Shown here piece after piece: positions 2,865-62,642 of a stretch of 64,000 nt of DNA. The number at the start of each line of letters is the position of its first letter. Positions within the stretch are counted from its first letter, which is position 1. The notes beneath the pieces are model-generated. The model saw nothing but the letters and a program-made list of their open reading frames with translations. It was not told the origin of the DNA and did not search any database. The position numbers and the translations under genes were made by a program. The stretch lies in sequence record OQ363659.1. One strand, written 5' to 3'.

Positions 2865-2882
2865 AAAAAAAATACAGCATAA

Positions 2883-2902
2883 GGCTACCCCGAAGGGTAG
2901 CC
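2883..2902. terminator. bidirectional hairpin terminator
   Basis: GGCTACCC-CGAA-GGGTAGCC between convergent genes; A10 tract on the left; TTATGYYGT exits on both strands. Confidence 0.85.
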
Positions 2903-2913
2903 ATTATGTCGTC

Positions 2914-3171
2914 TCAGTACTTACCCTGCTGCAATTGGATCTCGACGATCTCATCTTGCAACCGGTCACGAATCTTGTTGATCTCGTACATGCAGATCGA
3001 CATGGTTGTGATTGTGGTTAAGATGCCAACCCACAATGCAATCATGATCTTACCCCGATGCATCACGAACCACTTGTTGTCATTCTGGGACTTGTACAGC
3101 AGTGCTCCCAGTGCGACTGGAACTATGCCAAGCATCAGCACCAGGATGAGTGCACTTATGTTTAAAAGCAT
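2914..3171 (-). CDS. small membrane protein (about 2 TM)
   Basis: 85 aa; two hydrophobic stretches; TAATG-coupled to the upstream gene. Confidence 0.7.
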   Translation of the reverse strand: MLLNISALILVLMLGIVPVALGALLYKSQNDNKWFVMHRGKIMIALWVGILTTITTMSICMYEINKIRDRLQDEIVEIQLQQGKY

Positions 3172-3443
3172 TACAGGGACTCCACGAGGCTATGCATGGT
3201 AATAGAAATATAAGCAGAGCCAAAGCCCCAGATCAGCAGCATGCCTGCGATGCTACCAATCATAATCTTCAAGCCGAGCATGAAAGTTTTCTTCTCCCAT
3301 GCTCGGGCATCTTTAACTGCCTGACTGGACTCTTCAGTTACAGGATAACTGAGACACATCATCATCAGTAACATCAGTACCGAAGAGCTGATGAGCCCAC
3401 CCAAGCATATTACATACAGCGTTAACATGAGATGATAGAGCAT
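3171..3443 (-). CDS. small membrane protein (about 2 TM)
   Basis: 90 aa; two hydrophobic segments; abuts the upstream stop codon. Confidence 0.7.
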   Translation of the reverse strand: MLYHLMLTLYVICLGGLISSSVLMLLMMMCLSYPVTEESSQAVKDARAWEKKTFMLGLKIMIGSIAGMLLIWGFGSAYISITMHSLVESL

Positions 3444-3686
3444 TTACATTATCCGATAGCACATTAAAGTGGATCGCAAGAAACACAGCGTCGGTATTGA
3501 GATGAACATTAATGTTAATCCCAACATCATACCGATGTAAGTCATTGCGATAGTTTCGTAGTAGCGACTACTGGTGTCATATACACGGACGTGCATAATG
3601 AACATTACTAACAATGCCAGCTCAATGAGCAACAGCGTACCGCCCATACCGAAGAAGTATCTAACTACTGATAGGTGTGGTTCCAC
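3444..3686 (-). CDS. small membrane protein (about 2 TM)
   Basis: 80 aa; GTG start with SD AAGGAG; two hydrophobic segments. Confidence 0.7.
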   Translation of the reverse strand: MEPHLSVVRYFFGMGGTLLLIELALLVMFIMHVRVYDTSSRYYETIAMTYIGMMLGLTLMFISIPTLCFLRSTLMCYRIM

Positions 3687-3903
3687 AGTTTAACTCCTTT
3701 TGCACAGGTGGCTTTTCAGGCCATTGGGTTGGTGGGAATAGTTCAGAGATTACCATCCATTGTCCTAAGCCCATTAGTATCATGGTAAGGAACATAGCTA
3801 GGAAGCCGTACTCGTTAAACTTCTTCGACATTTTACCATTCAGGTAATTCAGCATCAATATCGATGTGAAGACAACGATTACTAGACCTACAGCAATTTT
3901 CAT
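3661..3903 (-). CDS. small membrane protein (about 2 TM)
   Basis: start revised from 4002 to ATG 3903 (SD AAGGA); MKIAVGLVIVVF..., 80 aa. Confidence 0.7.
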   Translation of the reverse strand: MKIAVGLVIVVFTSILMLNYLNGKMSKKFNEYGFLAMFLTMILMGLGQWMVISELFPPTQWPEKPPVQKELNCGTTPISS

Positions 3904-3911
3904 GGGTATCC

Positions 3912-4088
3912 TTAGGTAATCTTGGTGATGATCAGGAGAACACAGTAGCCAGCCAGTAATACACACAGGCCGCCACCAAACAAACGTACGGTAACACCAC
4001 ATGCTGATTTAGCCGATGCAGCACTAAAGAACAGCACGAGGCCAAGACCGAACGTAATGATAATCGGAGCTAGCAATACAATCCACAT
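3912..4088 (-). CDS. small membrane protein (58 aa, not in ORF track)
   Basis: translated by hand: MWIVLLAPIIITFGLGLVLFFSAASAKSACGVTVRLFGGGLCVLLAGYCVLLIITKIT; SD AAGGA. Confidence 0.7.
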   Translation of the reverse strand: MWIVLLAPIIITFGLGLVLFFSAASAKSACGVTVRLFGGGLCVLLAGYCVLLIITKIT

Positions 4089-4123
4089 GATCGTATCCTT
4101 AAATGAGGGCTATATTCACAACT

Positions 4124-4131
4124 GTAATATA
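4124..4131 (-). promoter_or_regulatory. early promoter core TATATTAC inside a 10-bp inverted repeat
   Basis: GTAATATA on plus; arms GGGCTATATT (4107-4116) and AATATAGCCC (4126-4135). Confidence 0.55.
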
Positions 4132-4145
4132 GCCCCCAAGAAAGT

Positions 4146-4349
4146 TTAAATCAGATCCTTGACATACAGCCAGATAAACGTCGCGGCTCCGTAGACCGAG
4201 ATGAAGAACGATATCAAGGCGATACGGTGAGGCCAGGAGTTCTTCCAGCTGAAGTAGGGGATCAGGTTAGGGTAGCAACGATCGCGGTACCACACGGATA
4301 CCAGAGTGATTATAGTGGCTATCACCCAAACGGCATATGCATATTTCAT
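4146..4349 (-). CDS. small membrane protein (about 2 TM)
   Basis: 67 aa; SD GGAGGG; two hydrophobic segments. Confidence 0.7.
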   Translation of the reverse strand: MKYAYAVWVIATIITLVSVWYRDRCYPNLIPYFSWKNSWPHRIALISFFISVYGAATFIWLYVKDLI

Positions 4350-4370
4350 TTTGCCCTCCGGCGAAATAAA

Positions 4371-4390
4371 GTAGCACCCGAAGGTGCTAC
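4371..4390 (-). terminator. intrinsic terminator after the helicase
   Basis: GTAGCACC-TTCG-GGTGCTAC then TTTATTT on minus. Confidence 0.75.
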
Positions 4391-10530: not shown

Positions 10531-10535
10531 ATACT

Positions 10536-10553
10536 GGGAGGCCGAAGCCTCCC
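10536..10553. terminator. bidirectional hairpin terminator
   Basis: GGGAGGC-CGAA-GCCTCCC between convergent genes; ATATGTCGT exit on plus. Confidence 0.8.
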
Positions 10554-10562
10554 AATATGTCG

Positions 10563-11966
10563 TTACAGTCCGTTAGAACCGTATTGTGGCATCATTTGCT
10601 GTTGACCGTATTGCTGGAATTGCTGACCGTACTGCATCGGCATCTGCTGAGGCATTTGTTGCTGCTGTTGGAACACAGCCATGTACGGGTTCTGCGGTTG
10701 CATCTGCATTTGCTGCTGTGCTACCCATGGCAGTTGCGCTTGGCCACCTTGTTGCATTTGAGGCATCATCGGCATCTGGTGAACGATCTGACCGTATTGG
10801 TTGACCATCTGCTGAGGCGGATACTGCATCATCTGTGGTTGCTGGTAGACCGGCTGTGGCATTTGCGGTTGAGTGCTTGCCAGCAGTTGCGCTACGGTTT
10901 GGGTAGGCTTCTGGTTTTGCGGTGCGGATGCAGACGCTGGACGAGAAGCTTGTGGAGCTGCAACTTGGTTGTGGGAGAACATGTTAGCCATCTGTGGCAT
11001 TGCGCCGGACAGTTGTGGCGTAACTACTTGTTGGGTTTGACGTTGCTGTTGTTGTTGTGGTGCCGGGGCTGCTTGGGTTTCTTCAGCTACTTCATCAGTA
11101 CCACCGTCGTTACCGTTCAGCGATGGGATCTGGTTGTAGATCTTCGGGAACTCTTCGATCCACTCCAGCGGGAACAGTTCGATTGGTTTCAGCGGGAGTG
11201 CCAGAGGACCAGCGTAACGGTTGATCGATTGGTTCAGGCGAGTAGCGATCTTGTGATACGCTTGCAGGAATGCTGTGAAGAACGGTGCAACACGGCTAAC
11301 AGTACCAGCCGAATATTCTTCAGGGCTATCACCGAATGGAACGATCAGGCGCAGCAGGTTGGAAATGACTTTCCGTTGCTTTGACGGAACCTTAACGCCC
11401 AGGACATTGTCTTTGTCAGCATCATTGTCCAGTTCATCGAGGATCGGGAAACGGATCACAGCTACCCGGTTAACTTTCTGACCCTGGAATGTACCAGGGC
11501 CTTTCAGGTAAACAGTGATCAGTTTGTTTTGTTTGTGTGCCGCAGGGATCAGCTTATCCAGAATGGTCTGGGTTTTGTCAGTAACGCCGGTGAGCTTCAT
11601 CAGCACATCGGACATGTCTGGGGGCAGGTCTTTGTGGATGGAAGTGTTCAGCGACATTTTGACCAGAGCATCGGCCATGAACGACACCAGGAAGCCCAGG
11701 TGTTGTTTAACGCTACGCTGCATGTGTTGCAGGACTGGCGAAGTACCTTTACGGGAAAGGCTTTCGCACAGCGGGTGATACGGTTGCAGGTCTTCCGTGA
11801 AGCCATCACGCAGACGCTTGTTAGTCGGAATGACCAGACGAGCACCGTTCACTTTTGCTTCGGCCTTGGTACCGGTTGGGGTGACAATACTCACCAGACC
11901 ACTGTCGTCCACGTCATACTGCATGGACTTCAGGATACCCTCATAGACCTTCGAAAGAGATAGCAT
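10563..11966 (-). CDS. conserved Chimalliviridae core protein (phiKZ gp70 position) with Q/P/M/Y-rich C-terminal tail
   Basis: 467 aa; lies between picA and nvRNAP beta; low-complexity last ~170 aa. Confidence 0.8.
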   Translation of the reverse strand: MLSLSKVYEGILKSMQYDVDDSGLVSIVTPTGTKAEAKVNGARLVIPTNKRLRDGFTEDLQPYHPLCESLSRKGTSPVLQHMQRSVKQHLGFLVSFMADALVKMSLNTSIHKDLPPDMSDVLMKLTGVTDKTQTILDKLIPAAHKQNKLITVYLKGPGTFQGQKVNRVAVIRFPILDELDNDADKDNVLGVKVPSKQRKVISNLLRLIVPFGDSPEEYSAGTVSRVAPFFTAFLQAYHKIATRLNQSINRYAGPLALPLKPIELFPLEWIEEFPKIYNQIPSLNGNDGGTDEVAEETQAAPAPQQQQQRQTQQVVTPQLSGAMPQMANMFSHNQVAAPQASRPASASAPQNQKPTQTVAQLLASTQPQMPQPVYQQPQMMQYPPQQMVNQYGQIVHQMPMMPQMQQGGQAQLPWVAQQQMQMQPQNPYMAVFQQQQQMPQQMPMQYGQQFQQYGQQQMMPQYGSNGL

Positions 11967-20589: not shown

Positions 20590-20609
20590 AGCCTCCCCGA
20601 AGGGAGGCT
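20590..20609. terminator. hairpin terminator
   Basis: AGCCTCCC-CGAA-GGGAGGCT; TTTTT exit on minus and TTATGTTGT exit on plus. Confidence 0.75.
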
Positions 20610-20618
20610 ATTATGTTG

Positions 20619-21227
20619 TTAACCCAGCATCAACCCATCAGGTGATGTCGGGTCCATTTCGGCTGCGCTCAGCATATCTGGAATCAGGTTCCAGGTACGG
20701 AGGATATCGACTTTCTCGAAGACGGTCAGTTCAGCATCATCGCGAGTATCTTCAACATACTGCGTGAACTGATAACCATCGTCGTTAACCGTAACGATAC
20801 CATCCATGACTCGACGCCAATCGTAGTGCTTGGCACCAACGCCATCGCCATGTAGGTTTTCATAGCTGTCGCCATAACCGGTAACTTCGCCATTCAGATA
20901 CATCTTGCGCAGATCAGACTGAGCCATGATGTACCGCTGCATGATCAACGGAGCTGCTTGGATTTGCTCGATCGAGTTCAGGAACGTAATCGTGTTCGAT
21001 TGCCAAGCGTTCTCAGCTTTAACAGTCAAGTTCCTCAGAGCTTGTACCGCATCGCTGGTGGAGATCATCGTGTACAACGATGCTGCTTGGTTGAAGAAAC
21101 CTTGTGCTGCTGTTGAGATTGTTGCACGTAGTGCATCAGAACGGTCACCCAGCCATGACTGAGTACCCATATCCAAATGTCCACCTGCACAGATGTCTAA
21201 CAAATCGACACCATGTGCTTGCATCAT
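20619..21227 (-). CDS. conserved core protein (phiKZ gp59 position; candidate Imp3)
   Basis: start revised to ATG 21227 (SD AAGGGG), 202 aa; own early promoter; synteny downstream of the beta' N-half. Confidence 0.7.
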   Translation of the reverse strand: MMQAHGVDLLDICAGGHLDMGTQSWLGDRSDALRATISTAAQGFFNQAASLYTMISTSDAVQALRNLTVKAENAWQSNTITFLNSIEQIQAAPLIMQRYIMAQSDLRKMYLNGEVTGYGDSYENLHGDGVGAKHYDWRRVMDGIVTVNDDGYQFTQYVEDTRDDAELTVFEKVDILRTWNLIPDMLSAAEMDPTSPDGLMLG

Positions 21228-28281: not shown

Positions 28282-28301
28282 GGCTACCCTTCGGGGTAGC
28301 C
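28282..28301. terminator. bidirectional hairpin terminator
   Basis: GGCTACCC-TTCG-GGGTAGCC; same stem as 2883 in the opposite orientation; TTATGCTGT exit. Confidence 0.85.
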
Positions 28302-28309
28302 TTATGCTG

Positions 28310-28558
28310 TTAATCATTTTTACCGGCCATTACTTCAGCGGCATCGTAAGTCGGGTAGAAGTATGGAGTACGCTCAGAGCGATCCCACATCTCACCGATA
28401 GTGCGTTCACGATGGTTTGGTTGTGCACGCTTGATGCCACTCCATACCGCATCTGCGACGATGTTACCAGTGCCTGGACGGATGGAGTGATCTTGATAAC
28501 CTTTAGGCTTAGCCCTAGGTTTCTTTTGCTTACGCGGCTTTGGTCGATTCTTCTTCAA
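28310..28558 (-). CDS. small Lys/Arg-rich protein
   Basis: fills the gap to the terminator; likely TTG start 28558 with SD AGGTG (MKKNRPKPRKQKKPRAKPK...). Confidence 0.5.
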   Translation of the reverse strand: MKKNRPKPRKQKKPRAKPKGYQDHSIRPGTGNIVADAVWSGIKRAQPNHRERTIGEMWDRSERTPYFYPTYDAAEVMAGKND

Positions 28559-33364: not shown

Positions 33365-33394
33365 GCGAAATCCTCAAAAAGAAAACAACATAAA

Positions 33395-33412
33395 GCCAGC
33401 CCGAAGGCTGGC
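33395..33412 (-). terminator. hairpin terminator
   Basis: GCCAGCC-TTCG-GGCTGGC then TTTATGTTGTTTTC. Confidence 0.8.
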
Positions 33413-35601: not shown

Positions 35602-35987
35602 GATACTACCTCCATAGCTTCACGGTAAATGATGTTAACCCATTCGGTGTCCTCTATGGCTTCTACTAACACCAAGTCTTTACCGATGATGTGGGGTGAA
35701 CACTTTTGACATATGCTCTGGACGAGTAGTGTAACTTTACCGTAGAACTCGGTTTCGTCAGCATCAATCCCCATATAGCCGAGTTGCATAGCAATCATCT
35801 CAGCGAACTCGTCAGGGTTGTCCACGTTCTTTTGTATGATCGCATTGGCAATCAGATCTGTGATACGATCACGATCCTCACCTAGTTCTACGAACACATC
35901 CAAATAACACGGATGGTCAAACCCATAGAAGTCCGTTTGCGAGAACATCGCAATTGCGGTCTGTACGGGCACTACATGTTTCGACAT
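35448..35987 (-). CDS. hypothetical protein
   Basis: ATG 35987 with SD GAGGTG; overlaps the downstream gene by 154 nt. Confidence 0.7.
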   Translation of the reverse strand: MSKHVVPVQTAIAMFSQTDFYGFDHPCYLDVFVELGEDRDRITDLIANAIIQKNVDNPDEFAEMIAMQLGYMGIDADETEFYGKVTLLVQSICQKCSPHIIGKDLVLVEAIEDTEWVNIIYREAMEVVSCSSQPYTDLISKPGFQVMIKQENNSLVSLRVQHITELDPVDFSTTLSNGS

Positions 35988-36006
35988 TTCCACCTCACGG
36001 CATAAA

Positions 36007-36021
36007 GCCCCGAAGTGGGGC
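36007..36021 (-). terminator. weak hairpin with TTTATGCCGT exit
   Basis: GCCCC-ACTTC-GGGGC then TTTATGCCGT. Confidence 0.5.
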
Positions 36022-36022
36022 C

Positions 36023-38315: not shown

Positions 38316-38337
38316 ACAAAAAAAAGAAACGACATAA

Positions 38338-38357
38338 GGCTACCCCGAAGGGTAGCC
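38338..38357. terminator. bidirectional hairpin terminator
   Basis: GGCTACCC-CGAA-GGGTAGCC, identical to 2883; TTATGYYGT exits on both strands. Confidence 0.85.
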
Positions 38358-38366
38358 GTTATGCTG

Positions 38367-38675
38367 TTATTCGCTCAGGAACTGTTGCTTACACTTTTCG
38401 ATCTGTGCATTAGATGCTACACCCACTTGACCAGCAGCAGTGCGAATACAGGAACGGAACTGTGATTCCTTTTCCTCACGTATGATGCGGGTAGCTTGGT
38501 TGGCCAGGCTTTCTGCTCGGAACTCTTTATTGCGTTGGGCCATGTAATGCGGTGCTACAGAGAGTCCGTAGTATACTGACAGGATCATGATACCTACGAT
38601 ACCCCAGATGATCCACTTGACCAAACGACGCATTGGGTTCTTGGCTGCGCGTGCTTCCCAACCTGCTTCTCTCAC
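38367..38675 (-). CDS. single-TM membrane protein with 2-Cys soluble domain
   Basis: GTG start 38675 (SD AGAGGG; GTGA overlap), 102 aa; paralogous to the upstream gene. Confidence 0.7.
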   Translation of the reverse strand: MREAGWEARAAKNPMRRLVKWIIWGIVGIMILSVYYGLSVAPHYMAQRNKEFRAESLANQATRIIREEKESQFRSCIRTAAGQVGVASNAQIEKCKQQFLSE

Positions 38676-42138: not shown

Positions 42139-42149
42139 CAGTTTTCCTC

Positions 42150-44095: not shown

Positions 44096-44112
44096 CTTGG
44101 AAACGGCATAAA

Positions 44113-44130
44113 GCCTCCCCGAAGGGAGGC
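44113..44130 (-). terminator. hairpin terminator
   Basis: GCCTCCC-TTCG-GGGAGGC then TTTATGCCGT. Confidence 0.8.
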
Positions 44131-44555: not shown

Positions 44556-45323
44556 TTACCTCGTGAAAATTTCGTGGTATTGGTCAAGCTCTTTATCCAG
44601 CAATGCAACTTCCTGGAAGGTTAACTTGATACGTGTATGTGTGTCACTGTTCCGATAAGCATAGCCTTCGAGAACAATCGCCCGATAGTCCTTAACGATG
44701 TTCCGTTCGACATGGTTAAACACCACACCGAGTTTGATCAACCGTCGTACCAGTCGTGCAATAGCTCGACCCGCTTCACCTGGAATGTTACCGATGTAAT
44801 CCCAAATGTCAGTACGAGGTTCACCAGGGAATACACCAGCACCGGGATAACCACGGAAGTCAAGTTGGAAAGGTACTACCCCAACATCGCCAACAATTGG
44901 TCGCCAAACGCGATAACCGTCCGGAGTTTCCTCCAGTCGGTAATGAGCCTGTGGATATTCTTCTTCCAAGGCCTCTAGATGATCGTCTAACGCACGACGA
45001 ACACCTGCGTTGTACCGTAGGGCTGATTCGTTGTAATCACGCTCAAACGCGTGCTCAGCGCTTTCCTTAGTAAACTCTTTACGAACAGACCATTCATACC
45101 GCTCACCATTCGCTTTGTCGAAAATAGTGAAGTAGTACGTCATTGCATCCGATAGTTGGAATTGCACATCGAAGCGACCAATGTCACAACGGGGCCACTG
45201 ACTACGCAACCGACGCAGTGCGTCAATACGGTTCAGCATATTTTGATAGATGTCACATGGATTGCCAAACACACTCAAATCGATCGTCGTATTTGGTGCT
45301 GGCTTCTCACAACGCTTGTACAT
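44556..45323 (-). CDS. hypothetical protein
   Basis: 255 aa; SD GGAG. Confidence 0.75.
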   Translation of the reverse strand: MYKRCEKPAPNTTIDLSVFGNPCDIYQNMLNRIDALRRLRSQWPRCDIGRFDVQFQLSDAMTYYFTIFDKANGERYEWSVRKEFTKESAEHAFERDYNESALRYNAGVRRALDDHLEALEEEYPQAHYRLEETPDGYRVWRPIVGDVGVVPFQLDFRGYPGAGVFPGEPRTDIWDYIGNIPGEAGRAIARLVRRLIKLGVVFNHVERNIVKDYRAIVLEGYAYRNSDTHTRIKLTFQEVALLDKELDQYHEIFTR

Positions 45324-45376
45324 TGCGTCACTCCGTTTCGTTAACTACAGAGGATAAAAGAAAAACGGCATAGACG

Positions 45377-45392
45377 GGGACCCGAAGGTCCC
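45377..45392 (-). terminator. hairpin terminator
   Basis: GGGACC-TTCG-GGTCCC then ...CTATGCCGTTTTTCTTTT. Confidence 0.75.
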
Positions 45393-45400
45393 CGAATATT

Positions 45401-48024: not shown

Positions 48025-48041
48025 AAAAAAATACAGCATAA

Positions 48042-48061
48042 GGCTCTCCCGAAGGAGAGCC
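48042..48061. terminator. bidirectional hairpin terminator
   Basis: GGCTCTCC-CGAA-GGAGAGCC; TTATGYYGT exits on both strands; A-tract on the left. Confidence 0.85.
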
Positions 48062-48070
48062 GTTATGTCG

Positions 48071-48412
48071 TTAGATATCTCTCACTACGGGAGCACCGAG
48101 GTCAGCTGCAACATCGACCATCAGGCTTTGCACGTAAGGCTTGTAATCGTTGAACTGAGCAACAGTCAGATTGAGCTTGGTCAGAACTGCGTCATCGAAG
48201 ACAACAGTCCAACCAGCCCCATCCAACACCTTATCGTGTTCGGCTTTCGTTACGGCGTCCCAGCACGCGCTAGCGTCGCATTGAACCAGAGTGGATGACA
48301 TGAAGATTTCATGCAAGACATCCGGGTTGATGTCTGGATGTTTGATCTCTTCAGCTTGTGCAACAAAGCTAAAAGCAAGAACAGCAGACAATGCGAGGCT
48401 AGCGAGTTTCAT
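48071..48412 (-). CDS. secreted/periplasmic protein
   Basis: 113 aa; signal peptide MKLASLALSAVLAFSFVAQA|EE; two Cys (CDASAC). Confidence 0.75.
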   Translation of the reverse strand: MKLASLALSAVLAFSFVAQAEEIKHPDINPDVLHEIFMSSTLVQCDASACWDAVTKAEHDKVLDGAGWTVVFDDAVLTKLNLTVAQFNDYKPYVQSLMVDVAADLGAPVVRDI

Positions 48413-49644: not shown

Positions 49645-49664
49645 GTAATATAGATTTGTAATTT
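49645..49664 (-). promoter_or_regulatory. early promoter (TATATTAC core)
   Basis: minus strand AAATTACAAATCTATATTAC; 29 nt nearly identical to the 44061 site. Confidence 0.8.
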
Positions 49665-49689
49665 GTTGCATTGCACGAAACGACATAAA

Positions 49690-49707
49690 GCCTCCCCGAA
49701 GGGAGGC
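49690..49707 (-). terminator. terminator of the sheath-tube operon
   Basis: GCCTCCC-TTCG-GGGAGGC then TTTATGTCGT. Confidence 0.8.
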
Positions 49708-53051: not shown

Positions 53052-53987
53052 ATGGTCATCATGCCATACGAAACGACTCTCGGTCGTCTTAGCAAACCTG
53101 ACGAATATGTACGTGCAGCGCGCAAAGCCGAGATCGAATTAGCCTTGCCACCAATGGCAACCGTCAACAACGAACAACTCAGTGACACTGCTTACGTGAC
53201 TCCCCGCGAGGAACACGATGACATTCCGAACTTTGCCCACATCATCAATCTCGGTGACGAACGCAGCCCACGCTTAGTGGTGGACGGTCGTCAGTATATG
53301 CGTTACGATGAACGCACTGGTGTAACACGACTGATTGCCGCAAACGATTGGCAACTGCAATGCGTGCGAGTAGCCCTGACTCACAAACTGTTGGAGCAAG
53401 GTCCCCACGCATTCTCTCGCCTCACCGACTTCCCAGCCAAAGTTTTCATGGACTGGGTTACCGGCACACTGGTACAGCGTTACACACTGCGTCCTGAATC
53501 TGAAATGGCTCTGCGTGTTATTTCGGCTCTGTATTACCAAGCCATGTTGTCGCCAGAACTCCGTGAACCTGGTCACGATCGCGTTCGTTTTGCAACGATC
53601 CTTAATCGCATCACCATGGTGCCGATTGACTTCATTCTGAATCTCGTTGATCCAGACATGCAGAACACTATTGGTTCGCTGAACAACGCTAACGACCTGG
53701 CCAAAGAGCTGAGCACGAAAGCCCGTACCCTGAGCATGGGTGAACTGAAGTTCGCCGACTTGCACGTCCTATTAAAGGCATCGTGGTATGGTACTAACGC
53801 ATCGGATAACGTCGGTATGGCACTAGAACACCTACCGACTTGGATTGCCATTCTTTACACGGCAGTCTCCGATCGCTCATACCGTAAATCTAAAATCACA
53901 GAGCGTGCCGAGCGTGTTGGCCGCCCTAATGATATTCGCAACTTCATTGACCTCGTCGGTCGAGCAGTTACAGAAGAATTCGTCTAA
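53052..53987 (+). CDS. virion structural protein (phiKZ gp28 position)
   Basis: 311 aa; SD AAGGAG; first gene of the divergent late operon ending in the terminase. Confidence 0.75.
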   Translation: MVIMPYETTLGRLSKPDEYVRAARKAEIELALPPMATVNNEQLSDTAYVTPREEHDDIPNFAHIINLGDERSPRLVVDGRQYMRYDERTGVTRLIAANDWQLQCVRVALTHKLLEQGPHAFSRLTDFPAKVFMDWVTGTLVQRYTLRPESEMALRVISALYYQAMLSPELREPGHDRVRFATILNRITMVPIDFILNLVDPDMQNTIGSLNNANDLAKELSTKARTLSMGELKFADLHVLLKASWYGTNASDNVGMALEHLPTWIAILYTAVSDRSYRKSKITERAERVGRPNDIRNFIDLVGRAVTEEFV

Positions 53988-53999
53988 CAGGGGACAACA

Positions 54000-56714
54000 A
54001 TGAACGACTATCTGTTGCGCTACGCGATTGATAACGTTTGGTGTAACCTTGGACAAGATCGGCAGTTTCAATACCAGCTGCGTCAATTGACTCCACGGTA
54101 CGGCACACGCCGTTACTACACAGTCGATGCGCAGAAATACGTACTGCCTTACGAGTCTGAACGGGATTGGTTCCACGTGTATCAAATCGGTCAGGTGGTT
54201 CCATCCCACCTGGCTCTCCCAAAGGTTTACAACCAATGGATGTCATTGGAGAAACTAGCTATTCATCACAAGATGCTTGGCGAAGTCTACGTTGACAGTG
54301 GTATTCAGTTCTCTCGGGCTCAAACCTGGGTATTGCTGACCTCCAGCCAAAACTTACTGGTTGCTGTAAAGATCCTTCCTTTATTCCCGGATTTGGATGA
54401 ACAACAGCCGTACCTTCACTTCTATCAAAATGCTTATTTCCAGAGCAAACGTTCGGATCAATCGGGTCGTAACTTCATTGAAGCGTATTCTATTCGTCCT
54501 AATACGACTGGAGAACTCCGTCAGTTCCAGATTAAAATGCAAGACCTGTTGGCCGAGAAAGGGGGCTTCCCTCTATGCTGGGTTAACGGTCGACTGGTGC
54601 AGGAAATCTCGTTGGTGACTGCTGGTGTGGGTGACTATTGCGAATGGGTATTGGATAGCTCGATCTATCGGGTTGCTGAGTACCGGTTGGGTAGTTCCCC
54701 TACGTTCACTTCGAAGTTGGACAGTGCTAACAAGTACATCATCCACTTGCCGAAGGATAAGTCCACGTCAACGATTGAGTTCCATGACGATATCGCCGTG
54801 TACCTCTGCAAGAACAACAACGCGTTGTCTCGGTTCTCTGGTGTTCACTATCACCACAACGATGGTAAGTGGATGCGCCAACTGACACACCGAGATTGGT
54901 CTGTTCCAGTAGGTCGTGTGCAATCGATGATCGCTAGTCACCCGGAAGATCCACGTGTTGGTACTGATCCACGGTGGCCTTCTGATAAGTGGGCTACATC
55001 TGATCCGATTTACCTACGGATGTATCACCGCCGTTCTGGTTATGAACGTCCGATCATTGCAGATTCGTCTCGTATCCAAGAGCTCTATCGGTTGAGCGAT
55101 GCGAATATCATTCGTGCAATGACAGGTGCAGATTCGTCTCACCTGTGGCATGCCGCTAACCTAGAGAAAGCGGCGTACGTTCGATTCATGTCTGCTGATC
55201 CTAATGTGATCTACCCGATCGCATTCCAAGATCCAACGAAGTCTACTCAGGCTAAGCGGGAAGCATTGAACTTCGCTGGTGACGTATTCGGTTATCATGA
55301 AGCTGCTCATCTGTTGGCTAACAACCCAGCTAAGGTTTATCTGTCGCAAACCGAACGGGTTGCTGACTTGGCTTACGTGTATTGGGAGAACGCTACGGTA
55401 TTCGAATTCAATAACGAAGGCATTCTGTTAGAGTGGCATCACCACACCGGTGGTTCTCGCTACTATGTCAAGAACACAGCTACTGCTTGGGTTGAATGTA
55501 TTACGGGTGTGGGTTCTACGGACCTGCAAGGCGTGTACGGTGTTGATCCAGTTGAACTACCAGACGGTTACGAGTTCCGTGTTTACGTGAACAAAGTCTG
55601 GGGTGGTGTTCCGACAGGTGAATGGCAAGATATTACCGATCTGGAGAATCGCCACGAATGGGGTTTCCTGGATGAAACGGGTACAGTACCGGTATGGCGT
55701 TGGACGGTGGCAGCCACTGCATGGCAAGGGTTGATCCGTCGTTCAGATCGATTCTTCCTGGACGTACGTCGGTTCAACAAGTCTGCGGGCATTATCAACT
55801 TTAGTTTCCGTCACACTTCGATGTCGTCTGGTCAAGAGACTGAAGAACTGATGGATATCCCGTTGGGTCAGCTCGATGTCTTCTTGGCGGATGAAAATGG
55901 TACAGGTGGTCGTTCATTGATCCAAGGTATCGACTATCAATTGATTCAAGGACCTACGTTCCAAGAAACAGTTGTGGTGTTGAACAACCTGGAATACCTC
56001 AATGACATCAACACCGTGATCATTCGTGCACACGGGTTCTGTTCACCAGACCTGAAGATGTACGGACCTTCGGAAGTTGGCTTCGTGGAATACGGTGTGT
56101 TGTCAGGTAATGGCGTCTATGATGTCCACACTCACAAAATGCAACGCATCGTAGTGGATGGTCATTATCGTTCTTTTGATGACGTTAAGTTTGATGAAGA
56201 CTTTGCTGACCGGGTAATTGCTGACGAACGTAATGGTGCACCTTACCAAATCCAAACTCCACAAGTTACATTCCGTGACGTTTACGATGCGGATGGTGCT
56301 GCTCGTGAACTAGATGATGTTCGGGATCAACAAGTTAGTGAATACATGACTGAGTATTTCCCAGCACGTGCTCGTCCTAACTCTGACAAGATCGAACGGC
56401 GTTACTACGTGTACAGTGCATATGCAAACAAGATCTTGAATGATCTGATTGCGGGTACGTTGAAGGTGCCGATTGTTAATGGCTTCTACAGTGACATGGA
56501 TGTAGCCAAAGCTGTTGCTAAGTACGATTGGTTGAAACCTTTCGACATGTGCAACACTGACTACAACAAGAACCACATTGTCATTTACCCACACTGGTAC
56601 TCGACCGCCCAAGGTTTGGACATCCAACAGTATGACTTCTTTGTGCGAGTACTGAAATTGGGTCTCCGTGAAGTACCTGATCTTGCGCATTCTATTTACA
56701 TCACGAGGACTTGA
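54000..56714 (+). CDS. large virion/baseplate protein (phiKZ gp27 position)
   Basis: 904 aa; N-terminus YLLRYAIDNVWCN typical of this family; synteny. Confidence 0.78.
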   Translation: MNDYLLRYAIDNVWCNLGQDRQFQYQLRQLTPRYGTRRYYTVDAQKYVLPYESERDWFHVYQIGQVVPSHLALPKVYNQWMSLEKLAIHHKMLGEVYVDSGIQFSRAQTWVLLTSSQNLLVAVKILPLFPDLDEQQPYLHFYQNAYFQSKRSDQSGRNFIEAYSIRPNTTGELRQFQIKMQDLLAEKGGFPLCWVNGRLVQEISLVTAGVGDYCEWVLDSSIYRVAEYRLGSSPTFTSKLDSANKYIIHLPKDKSTSTIEFHDDIAVYLCKNNNALSRFSGVHYHHNDGKWMRQLTHRDWSVPVGRVQSMIASHPEDPRVGTDPRWPSDKWATSDPIYLRMYHRRSGYERPIIADSSRIQELYRLSDANIIRAMTGADSSHLWHAANLEKAAYVRFMSADPNVIYPIAFQDPTKSTQAKREALNFAGDVFGYHEAAHLLANNPAKVYLSQTERVADLAYVYWENATVFEFNNEGILLEWHHHTGGSRYYVKNTATAWVECITGVGSTDLQGVYGVDPVELPDGYEFRVYVNKVWGGVPTGEWQDITDLENRHEWGFLDETGTVPVWRWTVAATAWQGLIRRSDRFFLDVRRFNKSAGIINFSFRHTSMSSGQETEELMDIPLGQLDVFLADENGTGGRSLIQGIDYQLIQGPTFQETVVVLNNLEYLNDINTVIIRAHGFCSPDLKMYGPSEVGFVEYGVLSGNGVYDVHTHKMQRIVVDGHYRSFDDVKFDEDFADRVIADERNGAPYQIQTPQVTFRDVYDADGAARELDDVRDQQVSEYMTEYFPARARPNSDKIERRYYVYSAYANKILNDLIAGTLKVPIVNGFYSDMDVAKAVAKYDWLKPFDMCNTDYNKNHIVIYPHWYSTAQGLDIQQYDFFVRVLKLGLREVPDLAHSIYITRT

Positions 56715-58399
56715 TGATGGCTTTTACACCATTCACTCGATCTGCCTACCTGGACCCCGAACGGGGGTTCTGGACTTGGCTTCGATCTGAGATCGTTAGT
56801 TTCCCTGGCGAGACTAACAAGTTCATTCCAAACGTGAACGATGCTGTCCGAGACTGGGACCAAGGGTTGTTCCGCGTTATCGAAGTCGATCAGACTACAG
56901 GCATGTCGGTGCTGGAGAAATGGGTAGAACCAGAAGCTCCAGATCCGGATGGTCCTGAGAACGTACTGATCGCAACTGGCCCAGGTTACACTTCGGAATC
57001 CTTCCGTATTTTCCTGGATCAAACTGTTACACCTCACACGTTCTCCCCAGACCTCCGTTGTCATTTCTATGGCACGGAAGTTCAAGGTTACAAGATCTTC
57101 CAAGGTAGCGACATCTCGGAAACTTACGGTAAGGTGATCTCGGAGTACTACGATGCTTCGGGTAATTACCTCGGCCCAATGATTCCTGTAGAAGTCGCTT
57201 TGCTCCCAGGTATGCTGCCAGGCACTCAGTACCAATCGGGTGTGACTGTACCAATGGCAGGCTATACTTCGGTGTCCCTGCCTGACGGTGAGCGCGTTAC
57301 ACTGGTTGCTTACTCAGCTAACGGCAAGCAACTGTCGATCGCACAACTGGTAGTCGTGAACTCCCAAGCTATTCGTCAGCCTGATACTTCGAAGCGTTAC
57401 GTTAAAGGCATCTCGATTGATTCCTCGTGGATTAGCCCGTCTGATCCTAAGGTCATTGAGTTCCCACTGAACGTTGCTGTTGAATCGCTGCCGATGGTTG
57501 GTCGTGTTCACTACCGTGATGGTAAGAAAGAACCTAAAGCCGTCAATGGCGGTCAAATGGAACTGTTGGGTCTCCGTAACTACGTGGCTACTGAAGTAGG
57601 CCAAGAGTTCGGCATGACACTGACTTATCAACTGGCTGATGATGAGATCTCTTACGGGTTGAATCCAACTACCGATCGCAAGATCACCATGTCGTATATC
57701 GCTCGGACTTCTCCGGCAGAAGGTGCTTACGAGTGTCGTCTGTTCGTGTATCCAGTTTGGGTCAGTGCGGCTGTTGGTTATCGGTTGGAGTTCTGGCTGT
57801 ACAACCAAGATCGTGAGCGGTATTGGAACATCACACCTCAGATCGAACTGGGTATGACTTCCAAGCCATTCGATCCGAAAGGTTACGGCTTTATCCAAGA
57901 CCTGACCTACGCGGTCAACTTGAACGAAGTCGACGGCGTGTTCAAACCTGTACGTTTCGTTAGTAGCTTCCAGATTGCCCTGCTGCAAGCTGGTGGTAAC
58001 ACTGACGCGAATTGGGAGATCAAGTTCCGTCCCGATCAAGAAGTAGCTTACGGTCGAGATCTGAAAGCAAACGTCGAATACATCGAAACTAACCAATGGA
58101 ACCTGCGACTGGCTAACGGTATGCAGACCAAAGAAACTTGGTTGCAGAAGATGTACTACAACGCTGAGCCTCTGATCAACCCTGAGTCTGAAGTTGTGGC
58201 GCCTGAGCCTACTCACTTCCGAGTGCATTTCCTGCACAACGTTTACGAGTACGCTATCTCGCAATGGAACGAAGTCCTGAAAGTAAACAACGACCTCACT
58301 AACAATGGTGAACTGGTTTACATTCAGTGGATTCGTCGAACTGTAGGCACCGATCTACAGCTTGCGATGACTGCTCTACCGCTGAAACAACTCGTGTGA
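56714..58399 (+). CDS. virion/baseplate protein (phiKZ gp26 position)
   Basis: about 561 aa; TGATG coupling; beta-rich; synteny. Confidence 0.78.
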   Translation: MMAFTPFTRSAYLDPERGFWTWLRSEIVSFPGETNKFIPNVNDAVRDWDQGLFRVIEVDQTTGMSVLEKWVEPEAPDPDGPENVLIATGPGYTSESFRIFLDQTVTPHTFSPDLRCHFYGTEVQGYKIFQGSDISETYGKVISEYYDASGNYLGPMIPVEVALLPGMLPGTQYQSGVTVPMAGYTSVSLPDGERVTLVAYSANGKQLSIAQLVVVNSQAIRQPDTSKRYVKGISIDSSWISPSDPKVIEFPLNVAVESLPMVGRVHYRDGKKEPKAVNGGQMELLGLRNYVATEVGQEFGMTLTYQLADDEISYGLNPTTDRKITMSYIARTSPAEGAYECRLFVYPVWVSAAVGYRLEFWLYNQDRERYWNITPQIELGMTSKPFDPKGYGFIQDLTYAVNLNEVDGVFKPVRFVSSFQIALLQAGGNTDANWEIKFRPDQEVAYGRDLKANVEYIETNQWNLRLANGMQTKETWLQKMYYNAEPLINPESEVVAPEPTHFRVHFLHNVYEYAISQWNEVLKVNNDLTNNGELVYIQWIRRTVGTDLQLAMTALPLKQLV

Positions 58400-58409: not shown

Positions 58410-58429
58410 CGGCTACCCAATGGTAGCCG
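58410..58429 (+). terminator. hairpin terminator before the terminase
   Basis: CGGCTACC-CAAT-GGTAGCCG then TTTATGCCGT. Confidence 0.7.
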
Positions 58430-58443
58430 TTTATGCCGTAATT

Positions 58444-60687: not shown

Positions 60688-60710
60688 AAACAAAAAAAAA
60701 TAAAGCGAAT

Positions 60711-60730
60711 GGCTCTCCCGAAGGAGAGCC
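60711..60730. terminator. bidirectional hairpin terminator
   Basis: GGCTCTCC-CGAA-GGAGAGCC, identical to 48042; between convergent genes. Confidence 0.85.
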
Positions 60731-60739
60731 AATTTGCCG

Positions 60740-61498
60740 TTACATCTGGATAGATATCTCGATCTGTTGATCGACCTCAGCCCGTGCGACCAGTGAAGAC
60801 CGGTGGGTTGGATGAACCAGCGAACCATGCAATGCTTCTACTGGAACACCAACGGTACGGCACAGTCGGACAGTTGTTTCCTGTGCTGGGCCATAAGTGC
60901 GCCGGGCGTACCAGACACGATGATCTTCATCCGCAAAGCAGATGATGTCGGCCTCGTACTCACGGAACCATGTGCACAGTCGTAGGAAATCGAACTTCGA
61001 ATTCACCACGTCTTTTAGCAACGGCGTAGCTTCTTCAGCCGATGCGATCGGACGAGAAGCATGGATTACTTCCAGGCGTTTATGAATCGCCAAGATAGTA
61101 TCGTTGTCACGTCTCACCTTTTCAGGCTGACGATTCTCGTGCGTTGCCAGCATGACATACTGACCACGAAGACTCGGAAGGTCCAGTACGTGCGAACCAT
61201 CGATGTCAACCGTACCGAAACCATCATGCATTGGGACGGGGTGAATGTCGAAAAGCTCGCCAAACTCCATCACTGGACCACAGATACCTTCCACCACAGG
61301 CATGCCTGGATAGATGCGCTTCAGGCGTTCCCAGACATCCTGATGCACGTCCAGATCGATATCCGCGGTAGTCTCACGGATACCATGCATCACAGCAGCA
61401 GAACCAGCAGTGATGATGAAGTACTCAGGGCCCAGACCAGTGATCACAGCCAGAGCATTTACGTGAGAAGCGATTTGTTTCTTGTTCAGCATGTACAA
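60740..61498 (-). CDS. Pol-beta/MNT-type nucleotidyltransferase with extra C-terminal domain
   Basis: AGSAAVMHGIRETTADIDLDV (hG[GS]x9-13DhD) plus a later D in FDIH; SD AAGGA. Confidence 0.75.
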   Translation of the reverse strand: MYMLNKKQIASHVNALAVITGLGPEYFIITAGSAAVMHGIRETTADIDLDVHQDVWERLKRIYPGMPVVEGICGPVMEFGELFDIHPVPMHDGFGTVDIDGSHVLDLPSLRGQYVMLATHENRQPEKVRRDNDTILAIHKRLEVIHASRPIASAEEATPLLKDVVNSKFDFLRLCTWFREYEADIICFADEDHRVWYARRTYGPAQETTVRLCRTVGVPVEALHGSLVHPTHRSSLVARAEVDQQIEISIQM

Positions 61499-61501
61499 TC
61501 C

Positions 61502-61747
61502 TTAATAAGCTTTAGCGATCAGGGCGATCTCGAACAACGTTTTGTCGTCCGCGTTTTTCATTTCGATGTGGAGGACTTCATCACCCCAATACCAGATGTG
61601 GAACTTGTTACCTTCGATCGTGAGATGATCGTCAAATTCCATATCGTTTTCCAACTTCTCGCGATAGCGTTCGCAGAGTTGCTGGATGGTTGGCATGTGC
61701 TCAACCAAACGAGTGATACCAGTAGTTGCGTCGATACGATACATCAT
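61502..61747 (-). CDS. hypothetical protein
   Basis: start revised to ATG 61747 (SD AAAGGG), 81 aa. Confidence 0.6.
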   Translation of the reverse strand: MMYRIDATTGITRLVEHMPTIQQLCERYREKLENDMEFDDHLTIEGNKFHIWYWGDEVLHIEMKNADDKTLFEIALIAKAY

Positions 61748-61796
61748 ACACCCTTTCGAATAAAAAGGAAGGAGCCCGAAGACTCCCCCAAAGGAG

Positions 61797-62138
61797 TTAG
61801 TTTGCTTCGCGCAGCGCTTTGATCGTGCGACCGATATGGTAGAAGTCGGAAGCCAGTGCTTCCAGTTCATCTTTCAGCTCGGTGCGGAATTCGATGTTCA
61901 CCCAGACCAAGCAATCGATCAGGCATTCGAAATCATCGAACTCGATGTTGTGGGTGATAGTCCCTTTGGACTTATCGTAAGTAACGAGAGTCTCGTTATC
62001 TTTGATTACCGTCAGGACATCGTCTTCAACTTCGAAAGTGAAGGCAGTGCCAAACGGTGAGTATTCGGTCATGAAACGTTCGCCAGTTGCGATGAACAGG
62101 TTCATCAGCAGGTGCAGCTTCTTCATTTGCATCTTCAT
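61797..62138 (-). CDS. hypothetical acidic protein
   Basis: 113 aa; SD AAGGAG. Confidence 0.65.
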   Translation of the reverse strand: MKMQMKKLHLLMNLFIATGERFMTEYSPFGTAFTFEVEDDVLTVIKDNETLVTYDKSKGTITHNIEFDDFECLIDCLVWVNIEFRTELKDELEALASDFYHIGRTIKALREAN

Positions 62139-62167
62139 GGTGCAGCTCCTTGGTTTGTGCAGCTATC

Positions 62168-62557
62168 TTAGTTTACTTCGGGTTCAGCGTCAACATCTTT
62201 CTTCGGGTGTTTTACATCGATGCAGCGGAGAATCGCAAACGGCTGATCGACTTGCATCGCCAAGCGTTTCGCTTCATCTTTAGCCAAGCGTTTGGTCTGA
62301 TGCATCCATGGTCGGTTAGACGGATGGATCGTACCCAGAGGACTTACTTTTGCAACAATGAACTTGCCAACTGGACGAGAACCATCGCCACCTTCGACAG
62401 ACCAGCTCGAATTATGGTAAAGCATGTAACCAGTCCACCAGCCGTGAGTCTTCGGTGATGCGTAACCATCATCACTGGCTCTGCGGTTGAAGTTCGCATT
62501 CGGGAAACGCTTGCGGGCATCTTGTTCAAATTGTTCACGCATTTCAATCAAAGACAT
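62168..62557 (-). CDS. early hypothetical protein
   Basis: 129 aa; SD AGGAG; promoter upstream. Confidence 0.7.
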   Translation of the reverse strand: MSLIEMREQFEQDARKRFPNANFNRRASDDGYASPKTHGWWTGYMLYHNSSWSVEGGDGSRPVGKFIVAKVSPLGTIHPSNRPWMHQTKRLAKDEAKRLAMQVDQPFAILRCIDVKHPKKDVDAEPEVN

Positions 62558-62583
62558 CTTTTCACTCCTATTGATACACGAAA

Positions 62584-62603
62584 GTAATATAGGCTTTTAA
62601 AAC
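62584..62603 (-). promoter_or_regulatory. early promoter (TATATTAC core)
   Basis: minus strand GTTTTAAAAGCCTATATTAC. Confidence 0.65.
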
Positions 62604-62624
62604 GTTTGAATGTTACGGCATAAA

Positions 62625-62642
62625 GCCTCCCCGAAGGGAGGC
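62625..62642 (-). terminator. terminator after DHFR
   Basis: GCCTCCC-TTCG-GGGAGGC then TTTATGCCGT. Confidence 0.8.

Follow-up and report, generated by a model that had tools for sequence, protein, structure and literature searches.

Hairpins followed by TATGYYGT at gene ends of Pseudomonas phage D6 are probably transcription terminators of the published phiKZ type

The window analyzed here is the final 64 kb of Pseudomonas phage D6 (OQ363659.1; 100% match), a phiKZ-like jumbo phage that encodes multisubunit RNA polymerases of its own. The annotation of its 307-kb genome includes RNA polymerase beta-type genes and PhuZ tubulin, and its GC content is 48%, versus 37% for phiKZ. D6 is 72-82% identical to Psa21, RVTF4, PhiPA3, and HPP-Temi over parts of the query only, and the Psa21 stretch that carries the nuclear shell protein gene is collinear with the window. 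Twenty intergenic GC-rich hairpins are present in the window, 17 of them with a TTCG/CGAA loop. Thirteen have stems of 7-8 bp, with stabilities predicted at -11 to -17 kcal/mol when the 3′ flank is left out, and several stems recur (GGCTACCC three times, GCCTCCC four to five times, GGCTCTCC twice, and GGAGGGC twice). This inventory agrees with the original prediction, which described about 20 mostly UUCG-looped hairpins with some identical stems.

The sequence TATGYYGT occurs 22 times in the window, compared with 8.4 ± 3.0 occurrences expected from dinucleotide shuffles (maximum 15). Sixteen of these copies follow a GC-rich hairpin, usually with a UUCG loop, at a distance of 1-3 nt, which confirms the proposed closeness of motif and stem at 16 hairpin exits. 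These copies constitute 16 exact instances of a TTATKYYGT-type 3′ flank within 0-3 nt of a stem. For 15 of them, at this same distance, the stem is perfect, GC-rich, and 7 bp or longer; the sixteenth (35997) follows an imperfect hairpin. All 16 positions listed previously are right, with plus-strand values one base early owing to inclusion of the preceding T, A, or C. Random placement of 22 copies would put about 0.05 at hairpin exits (260 of 128,000 strand positions). The six remaining matches (4330, 5743, 16191, 16362, 23143, and 44162) are intragenic and at chance level. The combination of hairpin and TATGYYGT is therefore a real signal, far above chance.

Three convergent junctions carry the motif on both strands, as had been noted for the hairpins at 2883, 38338, and 48042. 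At 2874..2912, the flanking plus-strand and minus-strand genes end at 2864 and 2914, respectively, and the hairpin (2883-2902) exits into TATGTCGT on the plus strand and into TATGCTGT followed by T10 on the minus strand. The other two putative bidirectional terminators are located at 38329..38367 (hairpin 38338-38357; plus exit TATGCTGT, minus exit TATGTCGT and then a T-run) and at 48033..48071 (hairpin 48042-48061; plus exit TATGTCGT, minus exit TATGCTGT and then T9). The Psa21 orthologue of the first keeps the plus-strand motif with a different stem, and the counterpart of the third has stem GGCTACCC in place of the D6 stem GGCTCTCC and keeps both motif copies. At the convergent junction 10535..10563 (plus strand), the hairpin (10535-10554) exits into TATGTCGT, and the minus strand has a UUCG hairpin followed by AGTATTCATTT; its Psa21 counterpart shows a compensatory stem change from GGGAGGC to GGGAGCC and an identical motif. 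The convergent junction at 28282..28310 (plus strand) has a UUCG hairpin (28282-28301) followed by TATGCTGT, with a near-match, TATGTCAA, on the minus strand and a 5′ CATAA that contains the stop codon of the plus-strand gene. In Psa21, both stem and loop at the corresponding site are entirely different, but TTTATGTTGT is kept.

Other candidate terminators follow or separate co-directional genes. Between minus-strand genes at 33385..33412 (minus strand), the hairpin (33395-33412) exits into TATGTTGT; a T-rich run follows, and then a ribosome-binding site and the start codon of the next gene. The minus-strand element at 35997..36024, which combines the imperfect hairpin with TATGCCGT, is separated by 9 nt from the downstream start codon of gene 35448..35987 and is likely a leaky terminator (attenuator) within an operon. 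Upstream of a virion structural gene, the minus-strand site at 45365..45394 (hairpin 45375-45394) exits into TATGCCGT and then a T-rich run; in Psa21, the pair at the stem base is T-A instead of C-G, a compensatory change, and the motif is identical. The plus-strand site at 58410..58439 (hairpin 58410-58429; TATGCCGT) follows the late structural operon 53052..58399, precedes the terminase gene by about 90 nt, and is conserved in Psa21. Three minus-strand sites each precede an early-promoter-like box: 44103..44130 (hairpin 44113-44130; TATGCCGT; box 44076-44084, 19 nt downstream), 49680..49707 (hairpin 49690-49707; TATGTCGT; box 49645-49653, 27 nt downstream), and 62615..62642 (hairpin 62625-62642; TATGCCGT; box 62584-62592, 23 nt downstream).

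Degenerate exits are found at two sites. The minus-strand site at 4361..4390 reads TTTATTTCGC, which fits TTATKYYGY, and its Psa21 counterpart reads TTTATGTCAT. A putative bidirectional terminator after the terminase gene (60710..60740) has the plus exit ATTTGCCGT, with a one-mismatch motif copy (TTTGCCGT), and an ordinary T-run as its minus exit; the Psa21 counterpart has an exact TATGTCGT. Thus, across orthologous sites of D6 and Psa21, the motif is kept and the stems are changed by compensatory pairs or replaced. The single exception to sense orientation in the window is an exact TATGTTGT copy at 20612-20619 on the plus strand, which is antisense to both neighbors and is the exit of no annotated transcript. 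It belongs to a terminator between two minus-strand genes (20590..20619, minus strand), which has a T5 exit on that strand, and the orthologous Psa21 site has no hairpin.

The same distribution holds over the whole D6 genome, where hairpin exits account for 42 of 68 exact TATGYYGT copies. The motif occupies 39 of 116 hairpin sites lying in sense just past the end of a gene, 3 of 70 antisense sites, and 0 of 186 intragenic sites, and so it marks gene ends on the transcribed strand, in both directions between convergent genes. Convergent junctions are the densest class, with 24 copies at 50 strand-sites, 18 of 25 hairpins occupied, and six carrying the motif on both strands; divergent junctions genome-wide have no motif copies. 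When sites are selected for TATKYYG (50 of 116 sense sites), the following T, which is outside the selection, is present in 86%. The resulting exit matrix is T (.60), T (.76), TAT, K (G.82, T.18), Y, Y, G, T (.86). An ordinary U-tract (7 or more U among the first 10 nt) is found at only 12 of 116 sense exits. In the window, a T-run is absent at about 10 of the 16 copies and otherwise begins 10-11 nt past the short stem, so that these sites lack the uninterrupted U-tract directly at the stem of a canonical terminator.

This matrix matches, letter for letter, the consensus printed for 61 mapped phiKZ terminators, BCCYCCCCHWWDGGGRRGGBYTTATKYYGT, in Putzeys et al. 2024 (Microlife, PMC10914365). 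The earlier statement that the motif is undescribed is therefore wrong, as YTTATKYYGT is part of that consensus. In 201phi2-1, the closest relative with a mapped transcriptome, motif A (n=59) is said to 'strongly resemble' the phiKZ consensus (Poppeliers et al. 2024, Microb Biotechnol, PMC11512511), and the two papers give the hairpin with TTATKYYGT as the main motif at mapped transcript 3′ ends in both phages. We placed the eight 3′ ends printed in PMC11512511 on NC_010821.1. At the stated resolution of about 2 nt, all eight printed positions fall inside the motif of a hairpin-TTTATGYYGT element, 7-8 nt past the stem, and seven of the eight coincide with the second Y, with G next. As in D6, the phiKZ terminator is a GC-rich stem-loop followed by YTTATKYYGT, is located at gene ends, acts bidirectionally between convergent genes, and is the dominant type of its genome. 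D6 differs in having more uniformly UUCG loops and a smaller stem repertoire. With a probability of roughly 0.85, we consider the D6 elements to be transcription terminators of this conserved phiKZ/201phi2-1 type. The signal itself is real and already described, and would then be functional; the part of the original prediction that proposed a termination signal is correct in kind, given the same motif at mapped 3′ ends in the relatives.

Each element would consist of a 7-8 bp GC-rich stem, usually with a UUCG tetraloop, a gap of 0-2 nt, and (U)UUAUKYYGU in the position of the U-tract of an ordinary intrinsic terminator. By extension from 201phi2-1, the 3′ ends of D6 RNAs would lie in the YY of the motif, about 8 nt beyond the stem, a spacing normal for intrinsic termination. 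We suppose that the stem folds behind the polymerase, that the RNA:DNA hybrid is weak over the proximal UUAU, and that the Y-Y/G step, akin to the Y(-1)G(+1) of an elemental pause, may hold the polymerase there. At convergent junctions, the symmetric ACRRCATAA-stem-TTATGYYGT build would allow the element to stop transcription from both sides. On a strand that also bears a T-run, the two motif halves could pair to give a longer stem that abuts the run. Canonical Rho-independent terminators likewise have a stable GC hairpin, a U-rich proximal part, and an RNA end 7-9 nt past the stem, but in D6 the U-tract is exchanged for a specific sequence with A, G, and two pyrimidines. Because such a sequence stands in for the U-tract, ARNold labels many 201phi2-1 sites 'factor-dependent' (PMC11512511).

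Hybrid weakness alone fails to account for the strong conservation of G, YY, and GT. With the RNA end placed at the second Y, this base and the G after it in the motif would provide Y-1 and G+1 in the published elemental-pause consensus, G-11G-10T-3G-2Y-1G+1 (PMC6062546, PMC6336406), and the stem often supplies G at -10 (50% of D6 exits) and -11 (64%). T-3 and G-2 are unmatched, and the likeness is a resemblance only.

The proposed specificity for phage RNA polymerases did not hold up. All eight 201phi2-1 terminators stop expression in uninfected P. chlororaphis (PMC11512511), in an assay that admits Rho, nucleases, and cleavage with decay. Because these sites act in uninfected cells, seemingly with host RNA polymerase sufficing in the absence of phage factors as at canonical terminators, specificity for the phage enzymes is unsupported. 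Furthermore, motif-type terminators in D6 close both units with early-type promoter boxes and late structural gene units. The motif is also absent from the 50 kb sampled from each of EL and SPN3US, which possess the same two kinds of RNA polymerase as the motif-bearing phages. Because these two lack it, the motif is limited to a clade.

One alternative, which we judge unlikely, is that the motif is purely structural: UUAUG(YYGU) would extend the stem by pairing with (ACRR)CAUAA on its upstream side, and the motif sequence would be inherited rather than read. Indeed, predicted folds pair UUAUG with the 5′ flank at nearly all motif sites, and addition of the 3′ flank contributes -6.1 kcal/mol natively versus -3.8 with shuffled 5′ flanks. 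In 201phi2-1, an extra motif B lengthens the hairpin and accompanies stronger termination (PMC11512511), and the D6 5′ CATAA/3′ TTATG extension fits it and may correspond to it. However, site-specific covariation is absent, as 5′ flanks swapped among sites pair equally well or better (-7.1) and 199 of 200 flank permutations are no less stable than the native arrangement. At each of the three junctions with copies on both strands, one copy is of the CT form and the other of the TC form, which leaves an A-C mismatch; several sites lack the complement of YYGU. Moreover, an RNA that ends at YY would leave the motif inside the polymerase at release.

The original prediction also raised the possibility of a TATG promoter fused to every terminator. 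In this reading, the non-virion RNA polymerase would recognize a minimal TATG and either restart at the G for the downstream gene or produce antisense RNA at convergent junctions. The tetranucleotide is common to both signals, and the phiKZ enzyme requires TATG alone, in vivo as well as in vitro, and starts at the G (PMC10612078). For some genes, such as virion structural gene 44556..45323, the motif holds the sole TATG of a short upstream region, and the same is true of gene 35448..35987, whose start codon lies 9 nt past it. This reading is nevertheless disfavored, and we regard it as distinctly improbable. The peak of occupancy at convergent junctions would place promoters facing the end of an opposing gene, as is the case for 8 of the 16 window copies (20612 on the plus strand being antisense to both neighbors), rather than upstream of a middle or late gene, and divergent junctions have none. 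Because 89 hairpin-free intergenic sense TATGs show no flank conservation and no YYGT extension, YYGT goes with the hairpins rather than with TATG promoters, which are hairpin-independent; the late-promoter candidates of the window have the sequence tagTATGtaa. The mapped 201phi2-1 ends are 3′ rather than 5′ ends, 2-3 nt past the G, and the text of the phiKZ and 201phi2-1 transcriptome papers reports no start sites at terminators.

Very unlikely, in our estimation, is that the RNA ends arise by processing, either through nuclease cleavage of UAUGYYGU between YY and GU or through exonuclease trimming back to a stabilizing hairpin. Typically, 3′ exonucleases stall about 8 nt past a stable stem, and an end at that distance could equally be a product of trimming. 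The mapped 3′ ends are steady-state, phage and host both encode RNases, and a host reporter assay cannot distinguish termination from cleavage followed by decay. Against this, exonuclease stalling does not select a conserved sequence, and the strict association with gene ends, together with the copies on both strands where genes converge, meets the needs of a terminator. Read-through below 1% during infection and strong insulation of two reporters in uninfected cells (PMC11512511) likewise favor termination. Finally, it is scarcely credible that recombination spread the copies as a short repeat family in which the exit motif is a functionless passenger, for although the stem repertoire is small and orthologous D6 and Psa21 sites at times bear different members of a stem family, the motif outlasts unrelated stems and loops (e.g., site 28282 in D6 versus Psa21), has a sense-to-antisense bias of 39:3, and is common to genomes of 37% (phiKZ) and 48% (D6) GC.

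T4-type phages carry PeSL (promoter-early stem-loop) cassettes, in which intergenic stem-loops, present in repeated copies, are linked to early promoters. The phages, polymerases, and sequences all differ, but D6 has a similar trait in the hairpins at 44113, 49690, and 62625, each followed 19-27 nt on by an early-promoter-like box.

The sequence TATGYYGT, which lies at the 3′ exits of GC-rich hairpins, marks terminators of Pseudomonas phage D6, and its distribution is real and strongly non-random. Both strands of the window together hold 22 copies, compared with 8.4 ± 3.0 in dinucleotide shuffles, none of which reached 22. Inspection of every copy in context placed each of the 16 copies listed in the original prediction 1-3 nt past a GC-rich hairpin, and the other 6 are within coding sequence, where they do not exceed background. 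A scan of the window that was blind to the motif recovered 26 perfect GC-rich hairpins, 19 of them intergenic, as well as the repeated stems that had been described. With the imperfect hairpin at 36006 added, there are 20 intergenic hairpins, and a TTCG/CGAA loop is present in 17. If the 22 copies were placed at random, about 0.05 would be expected 0-4 nt past these stems, and 16 were observed. Enrichment over shuffles and the 16 hairpin-exit copies thus confirm the association that had been proposed.

The window corresponds to D6 record positions 243403-307402 of a 307,402-bp genome (OQ363659.1), to which a 12-kb segment of it is 100% identical, and the host of this phage is P. syringae pv. 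tomato DC3000. Within the phage collection, Psa21 and RVTF4 come closest to D6, with ~80% identity across parts of the query, and PhiPA3 and HPP-Temi are more distant (72-77% identity). Because RNA polymerase beta-type, DNA polymerase, PhuZ tubulin, tail sheath, and terminase genes are annotated in the window, and because the collinear Psa21 stretch includes the Psa21 nuclear shell protein gene, D6 can be assigned to the phiKZ-like jumbo phages. Window positions 1-64000 are inverted but collinear relative to Psa21 positions 1-72000, and the window ends exactly where the D6 GenBank record ends; the two records were opened near the same point on opposite strands.

Hairpin orientation in the window was read against the GenBank annotation. 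Between same-strand genes, seven hairpins have the motif on the strand being transcribed, 3′ of the upstream stop codon (33385, 35997, 44103, 45365, 49680, 58432, and 62615), and at one (20612) only the antisense strand has it. Another five hairpins with the motif are at convergent junctions: 2883, 38338, and 48042 bear it on both strands, and 10535 and 28282 bear it on one strand, with a near-match on the other strand at one of these two. Gene ends and terminators here are tightly packed, with zero spare bases. A minus-strand stop codon abuts or overlaps the facing plus-strand motif at 10563, 20619, 28310, 38367, and 48071, where the overlap takes the form TATGYYGT-TA, or TAA-CRRCATA on the opposite strand. 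Likewise, the plus-strand gene stop at 28280 is the TAA within a 5′ CATAA.

The same strand logic extends to the whole D6 genome. Genes outside the window were called with a codon-usage scorer. In the window, 67 of its 68 predictions end at an annotated stop, and it overlooks 9 small genes; it replaced calling by length only, which recovered just 57 of 76 annotated stops. Among 68 exact genomic copies of TATGYYGT, 42 are at hairpin exits. These occupy 39 of 116 sense strand-sites (defined by a same-strand gene ending upstream), 3 of 70 antisense strand-sites, and none of the 186 inside genes. Convergent junctions have 25 hairpins, 18 of which carry the motif (24 copies), and at divergent junctions the motif is found at neither of two hairpins. 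Relaxing the motif to TATKYYG yields 50 of the 116 sense sites, in which the unselected base after the G is T in 86%, and the two positions before TAT have T at 60% and 76%. From these flanking frequencies we derive the D6 consensus (T)TTATKYYGT. An ordinary U-tract is present at only 12 of the 116 sense exits.

Two TATGCC-type exits outside the window, near D6 record positions 11000 and 19053 (fetched stretch L008), follow TTCGG-containing sequence directly 3′ of the last tRNA gene in two tRNA clusters. Both were missed by the perfect-stem hairpin finder and so are probably imperfect hairpins, which makes the genome-wide count of motif terminators a lower bound. The result is a ready terminator map of D6 with about 50 motif-type sites, none of which is annotated.

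When the window is compared with 72 kb of collinear, inverted Psa21 sequence, the stems and their exits behave differently. At 10535, Psa21 has the stem GGGAGCC for GGGAGGC in D6, and at 45375 it has T-A for C-G at the stem base; the motif is unchanged in both cases. At 48042, the Psa21 stem is GGCTACCC for GGCTCTCC in D6 and both motif copies are kept, and at 28282 the stem and loop are wholly different and TTATGYTGTTAATC is kept. At 60710, Psa21 carries GGCTACCC and an exact motif, and D6 carries TGGCTCTCC and a one-mismatch copy. Sites with a plain T-run (5932, 19709, 23517, and 40199) retain it in both phages. The anatomy, strand logic, and conservation of the D6 terminators can be read directly from these data. 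The exit sequence itself is under purifying selection, with the stems drifting or being replaced. The stem repertoire is small (GGCTACCC, GGCTCTCC, GCCTCCC, and GGAGGGC), and at 2883, 28282, 48042, and 60710 different members sometimes occupy the orthologous Psa21 sites (fetched stretches L013 and L014). This pattern suggests that terminators have been replaced or have undergone gene conversion, in addition to slow compensatory drift.

The motif, for which the original prediction knew no earlier description, has already been published, with transcript-end data, for two sister genera. In phiKZ, ONT-cappable-seq mapped 133 termination regions, of which 61 share the consensus BCCYCCCCHWWDGGGRRGGBYTTATKYYGT (Putzeys et al. 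2024, PMC10914365). Its final eight letters are the motif considered here, and the first 50 kb of phiKZ contain the same TTATG exits. In 201phi2-1, 132 termination sites were mapped. Motif A (n=59) is described as one that “strongly resembles” that of phiKZ, and motif B accompanies it in 21 cases and makes the hairpin longer (Poppeliers et al. 2024, PMC11512511). The paper on the D6 genome is silent on both terminators and promoters. Thus, what is undescribed so far is the set of D6 copies rather than the motif, which our analysis extends to a further lineage comprising D6 and Psa21. A search of the whole window against Rfam at the gathering threshold gave zero matches.

A code shared by all Chimalliviridae is rejected by the relatives sampled. 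The first 50 kb of EL (L135) has terminator-like hairpins with 13-15 bp stems, repeated GGGTAGGGAGGG-type arms, and no shared exit, and the first 50 kb of SPN3US (L136) has UUCG hairpins followed by plain U-tracts. Terminator style therefore differs sharply among genera of nucleus-forming jumbo phages. Because EL and SPN3US have the same two polymerase types and lack the motif in these samples, the motif is a trait of the clade containing phiKZ, 201phi2-1, PhiPA3, Psa21, and D6, and is no requirement of the polymerases. An IMG/VR scan with CCTTCGGG-N5-7-TATGYYGT points the same way: among the matches listed, 30 of 80 loci derive from 20 contigs of 230-325 kb, with 201phi2-1, Psa21, and PhiPA3 among them. 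The remaining listed loci may be chance matches or fragments.

The position of the RNA ends was evaluated by using the eight termination coordinates given in the main text for 201phi2-1, which we located on NC_010821.1. All eight lie on the coding strand, past the gene end, and within hairpin-TTTATGYYGT, 7-8 nt after the stem. The marked end is the second Y, with G as the next base, at seven of the eight, and site 289834 still has its end within the motif even though a T-run comes after it. The distance from stem to end is usual for intrinsic termination and shows that the motif sits where a U-tract would be. When the eight sites were cloned between two reporters, all stopped expression in uninfected P. 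chlororaphis, and six matched or outperformed lambda T0. Predicted “factor-dependent” sites performed on par with “intrinsic” ones (PMC11512511). The host enzyme must therefore respond to the signal. By analogy with 201phi2-1, D6 RNAs would be expected to end at YY, and the D6 signal is probably active with the host polymerase.

Based on these features, it seems reasonable to speculate that the hairpin would form behind the polymerase, that UUAU adjoining the stem would provide a weak hybrid, and that the YY/G step might serve as the pause point. In E. coli, the pause consensus reads G-11G-10T-3G-2Y-1G+1 (PMC6062546). When the RNA end is set at the second Y, the phiKZ consensus matches it at GG (-11/-10), Y-1, and G+1. 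In D6, however, G-10 is present at only 50% and G-11 at only 64% of sites, and -3/-2 are unmatched. A full match to the elemental pause is therefore rejected, since the solid positions are just Y-1 and G+1.

Perhaps the phage multisubunit polymerases recognize the sequence TATG-YYG itself as a signal to pause and release, beyond any weakening of the hybrid, although we regard this as improbable. An elongation-bound nvRNAP specificity subunit could re-recognize TATG in a manner like sigma-dependent pausing, and the same box might also be a weak restart point. The register fits, because the 3′ ends lie 2-3 nt past the G that is the promoter +1. However, the host polymerase works on the signal, and EL and SPN3US do without it in the 50 kb sampled from each. 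Moreover, motif terminators close D6 units that open with early-type promoter boxes (from 49650 to 48042 and from 37380 to 36006) as well as late structural units (58410, and D6 genome position 183209 after the major capsid gene). Hence the proposal of phage-RNAP-specific termination holds for termination and fails for phage specificity. We know of no study showing the mechanism by which the two phiKZ-type RNA polymerases terminate. If they do read TATG-YYG, terminator and late-promoter recognition would be one protein-DNA contact put to two uses. A terminator class with a conserved, specific sequence as its “U-tract” is a handy probe of termination by these enzymes, but this probe is already published and the host polymerase reads it, so our finding confirms existing knowledge and opens nothing new.

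It was also reasonable to consider the hairpin-exit TATG as a promoter fused to each terminator, because the phiKZ non-virion polymerase uses TATG as its late promoter and starts at the G (PMC10612078). As the main function, this is counted against by the peak of motif occupancy at convergent junctions and by the mapped ends in 201phi2-1, which are 3′ ends. Furthermore, 89 intergenic sense-strand TATGs away from hairpins have zero flank conservation, whereas the flanks of hairpin-adjacent TATGs are conserved (Y.95, Y 1.0, G.81, T.81). A different box, CTATATHAY, resembles the AT-rich early promoter that the virion RNA polymerase uses in phiKZ-like phages. There are 13 in the window compared with 1.5 expected, on the minus strand at 4124, 10125, 15230, 21261, 25537, 29571, 37378, 44076, 46722, 49645, and 62584 and on the plus strand at 25619 and 37361. 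Eleven are upstream of minus-strand genes, mostly by 30-70 nt, and the usual longer form is AAATCTCAGATCTATATTAC. The box lies 19-27 nt downstream of the motif terminators at 44113, 49690, and 62625. Such terminator-promoter modules recur in 201phi2-1, where four of the eight sites have a similar AT-rich box, ATTTATATYAYT or AGTATATTACT, downstream.

On folding, UUAUG mostly pairs with the A-rich 5′ flank, often CAUAA and sometimes the full ACRRCAUAA, with a gain of -6.1 kcal/mol versus -3.8 for shuffled flanks. Pure stem extension as the cause of sequence conservation is nevertheless rejected, because flanks swapped among sites pair at least equally well (-7.1, with stability equal to or above that of the native flanks in 199 of 200 permutations); the swaps reveal no covariation of the motif with its own 5′ flank, and pairing thus fails to account for the conserved letters. 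The both-strand junctions (2874-2912, 38329-38367, and 48033-48071) always combine TATGCTGT with TATGTCGT, CT on one strand and TC on the other, so that the long inverted repeat is interrupted by an A-C mismatch. Across the D6 genome, native 5′/3′ flank pairs are also less complementary than swapped pairs. Avoidance of long perfect palindromes may lie behind both the mismatch and the weaker native pairing. D6 encodes SbcCD-like nucleases.

A separate intergenic element of about 80 nt, at 42150-42290 with its sense on the minus strand, is not a terminator of the TATGYYGT type, and an Rfam search of 42080-42360 at E≤1 gave only chance-level matches far below threshold. It is near-identical in D6, Psa21 (near 22471 of L013), and an uncultivated IMG/VR contig (near 11918 of L092). 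It is also clearly conserved in phiKZ (37% GC), near 31208 of the fetched stretch L137, between PHIKZ037 and PHIKZ038. The order of its parts is an AT-rich segment, TATGTGGGG, the palindrome GGGACCC / GGGTCCC around TTTGGGG, ATATA, and a second AT-rich segment. The palindrome gives two G7 runs, and in D6 a C9 run comes next.
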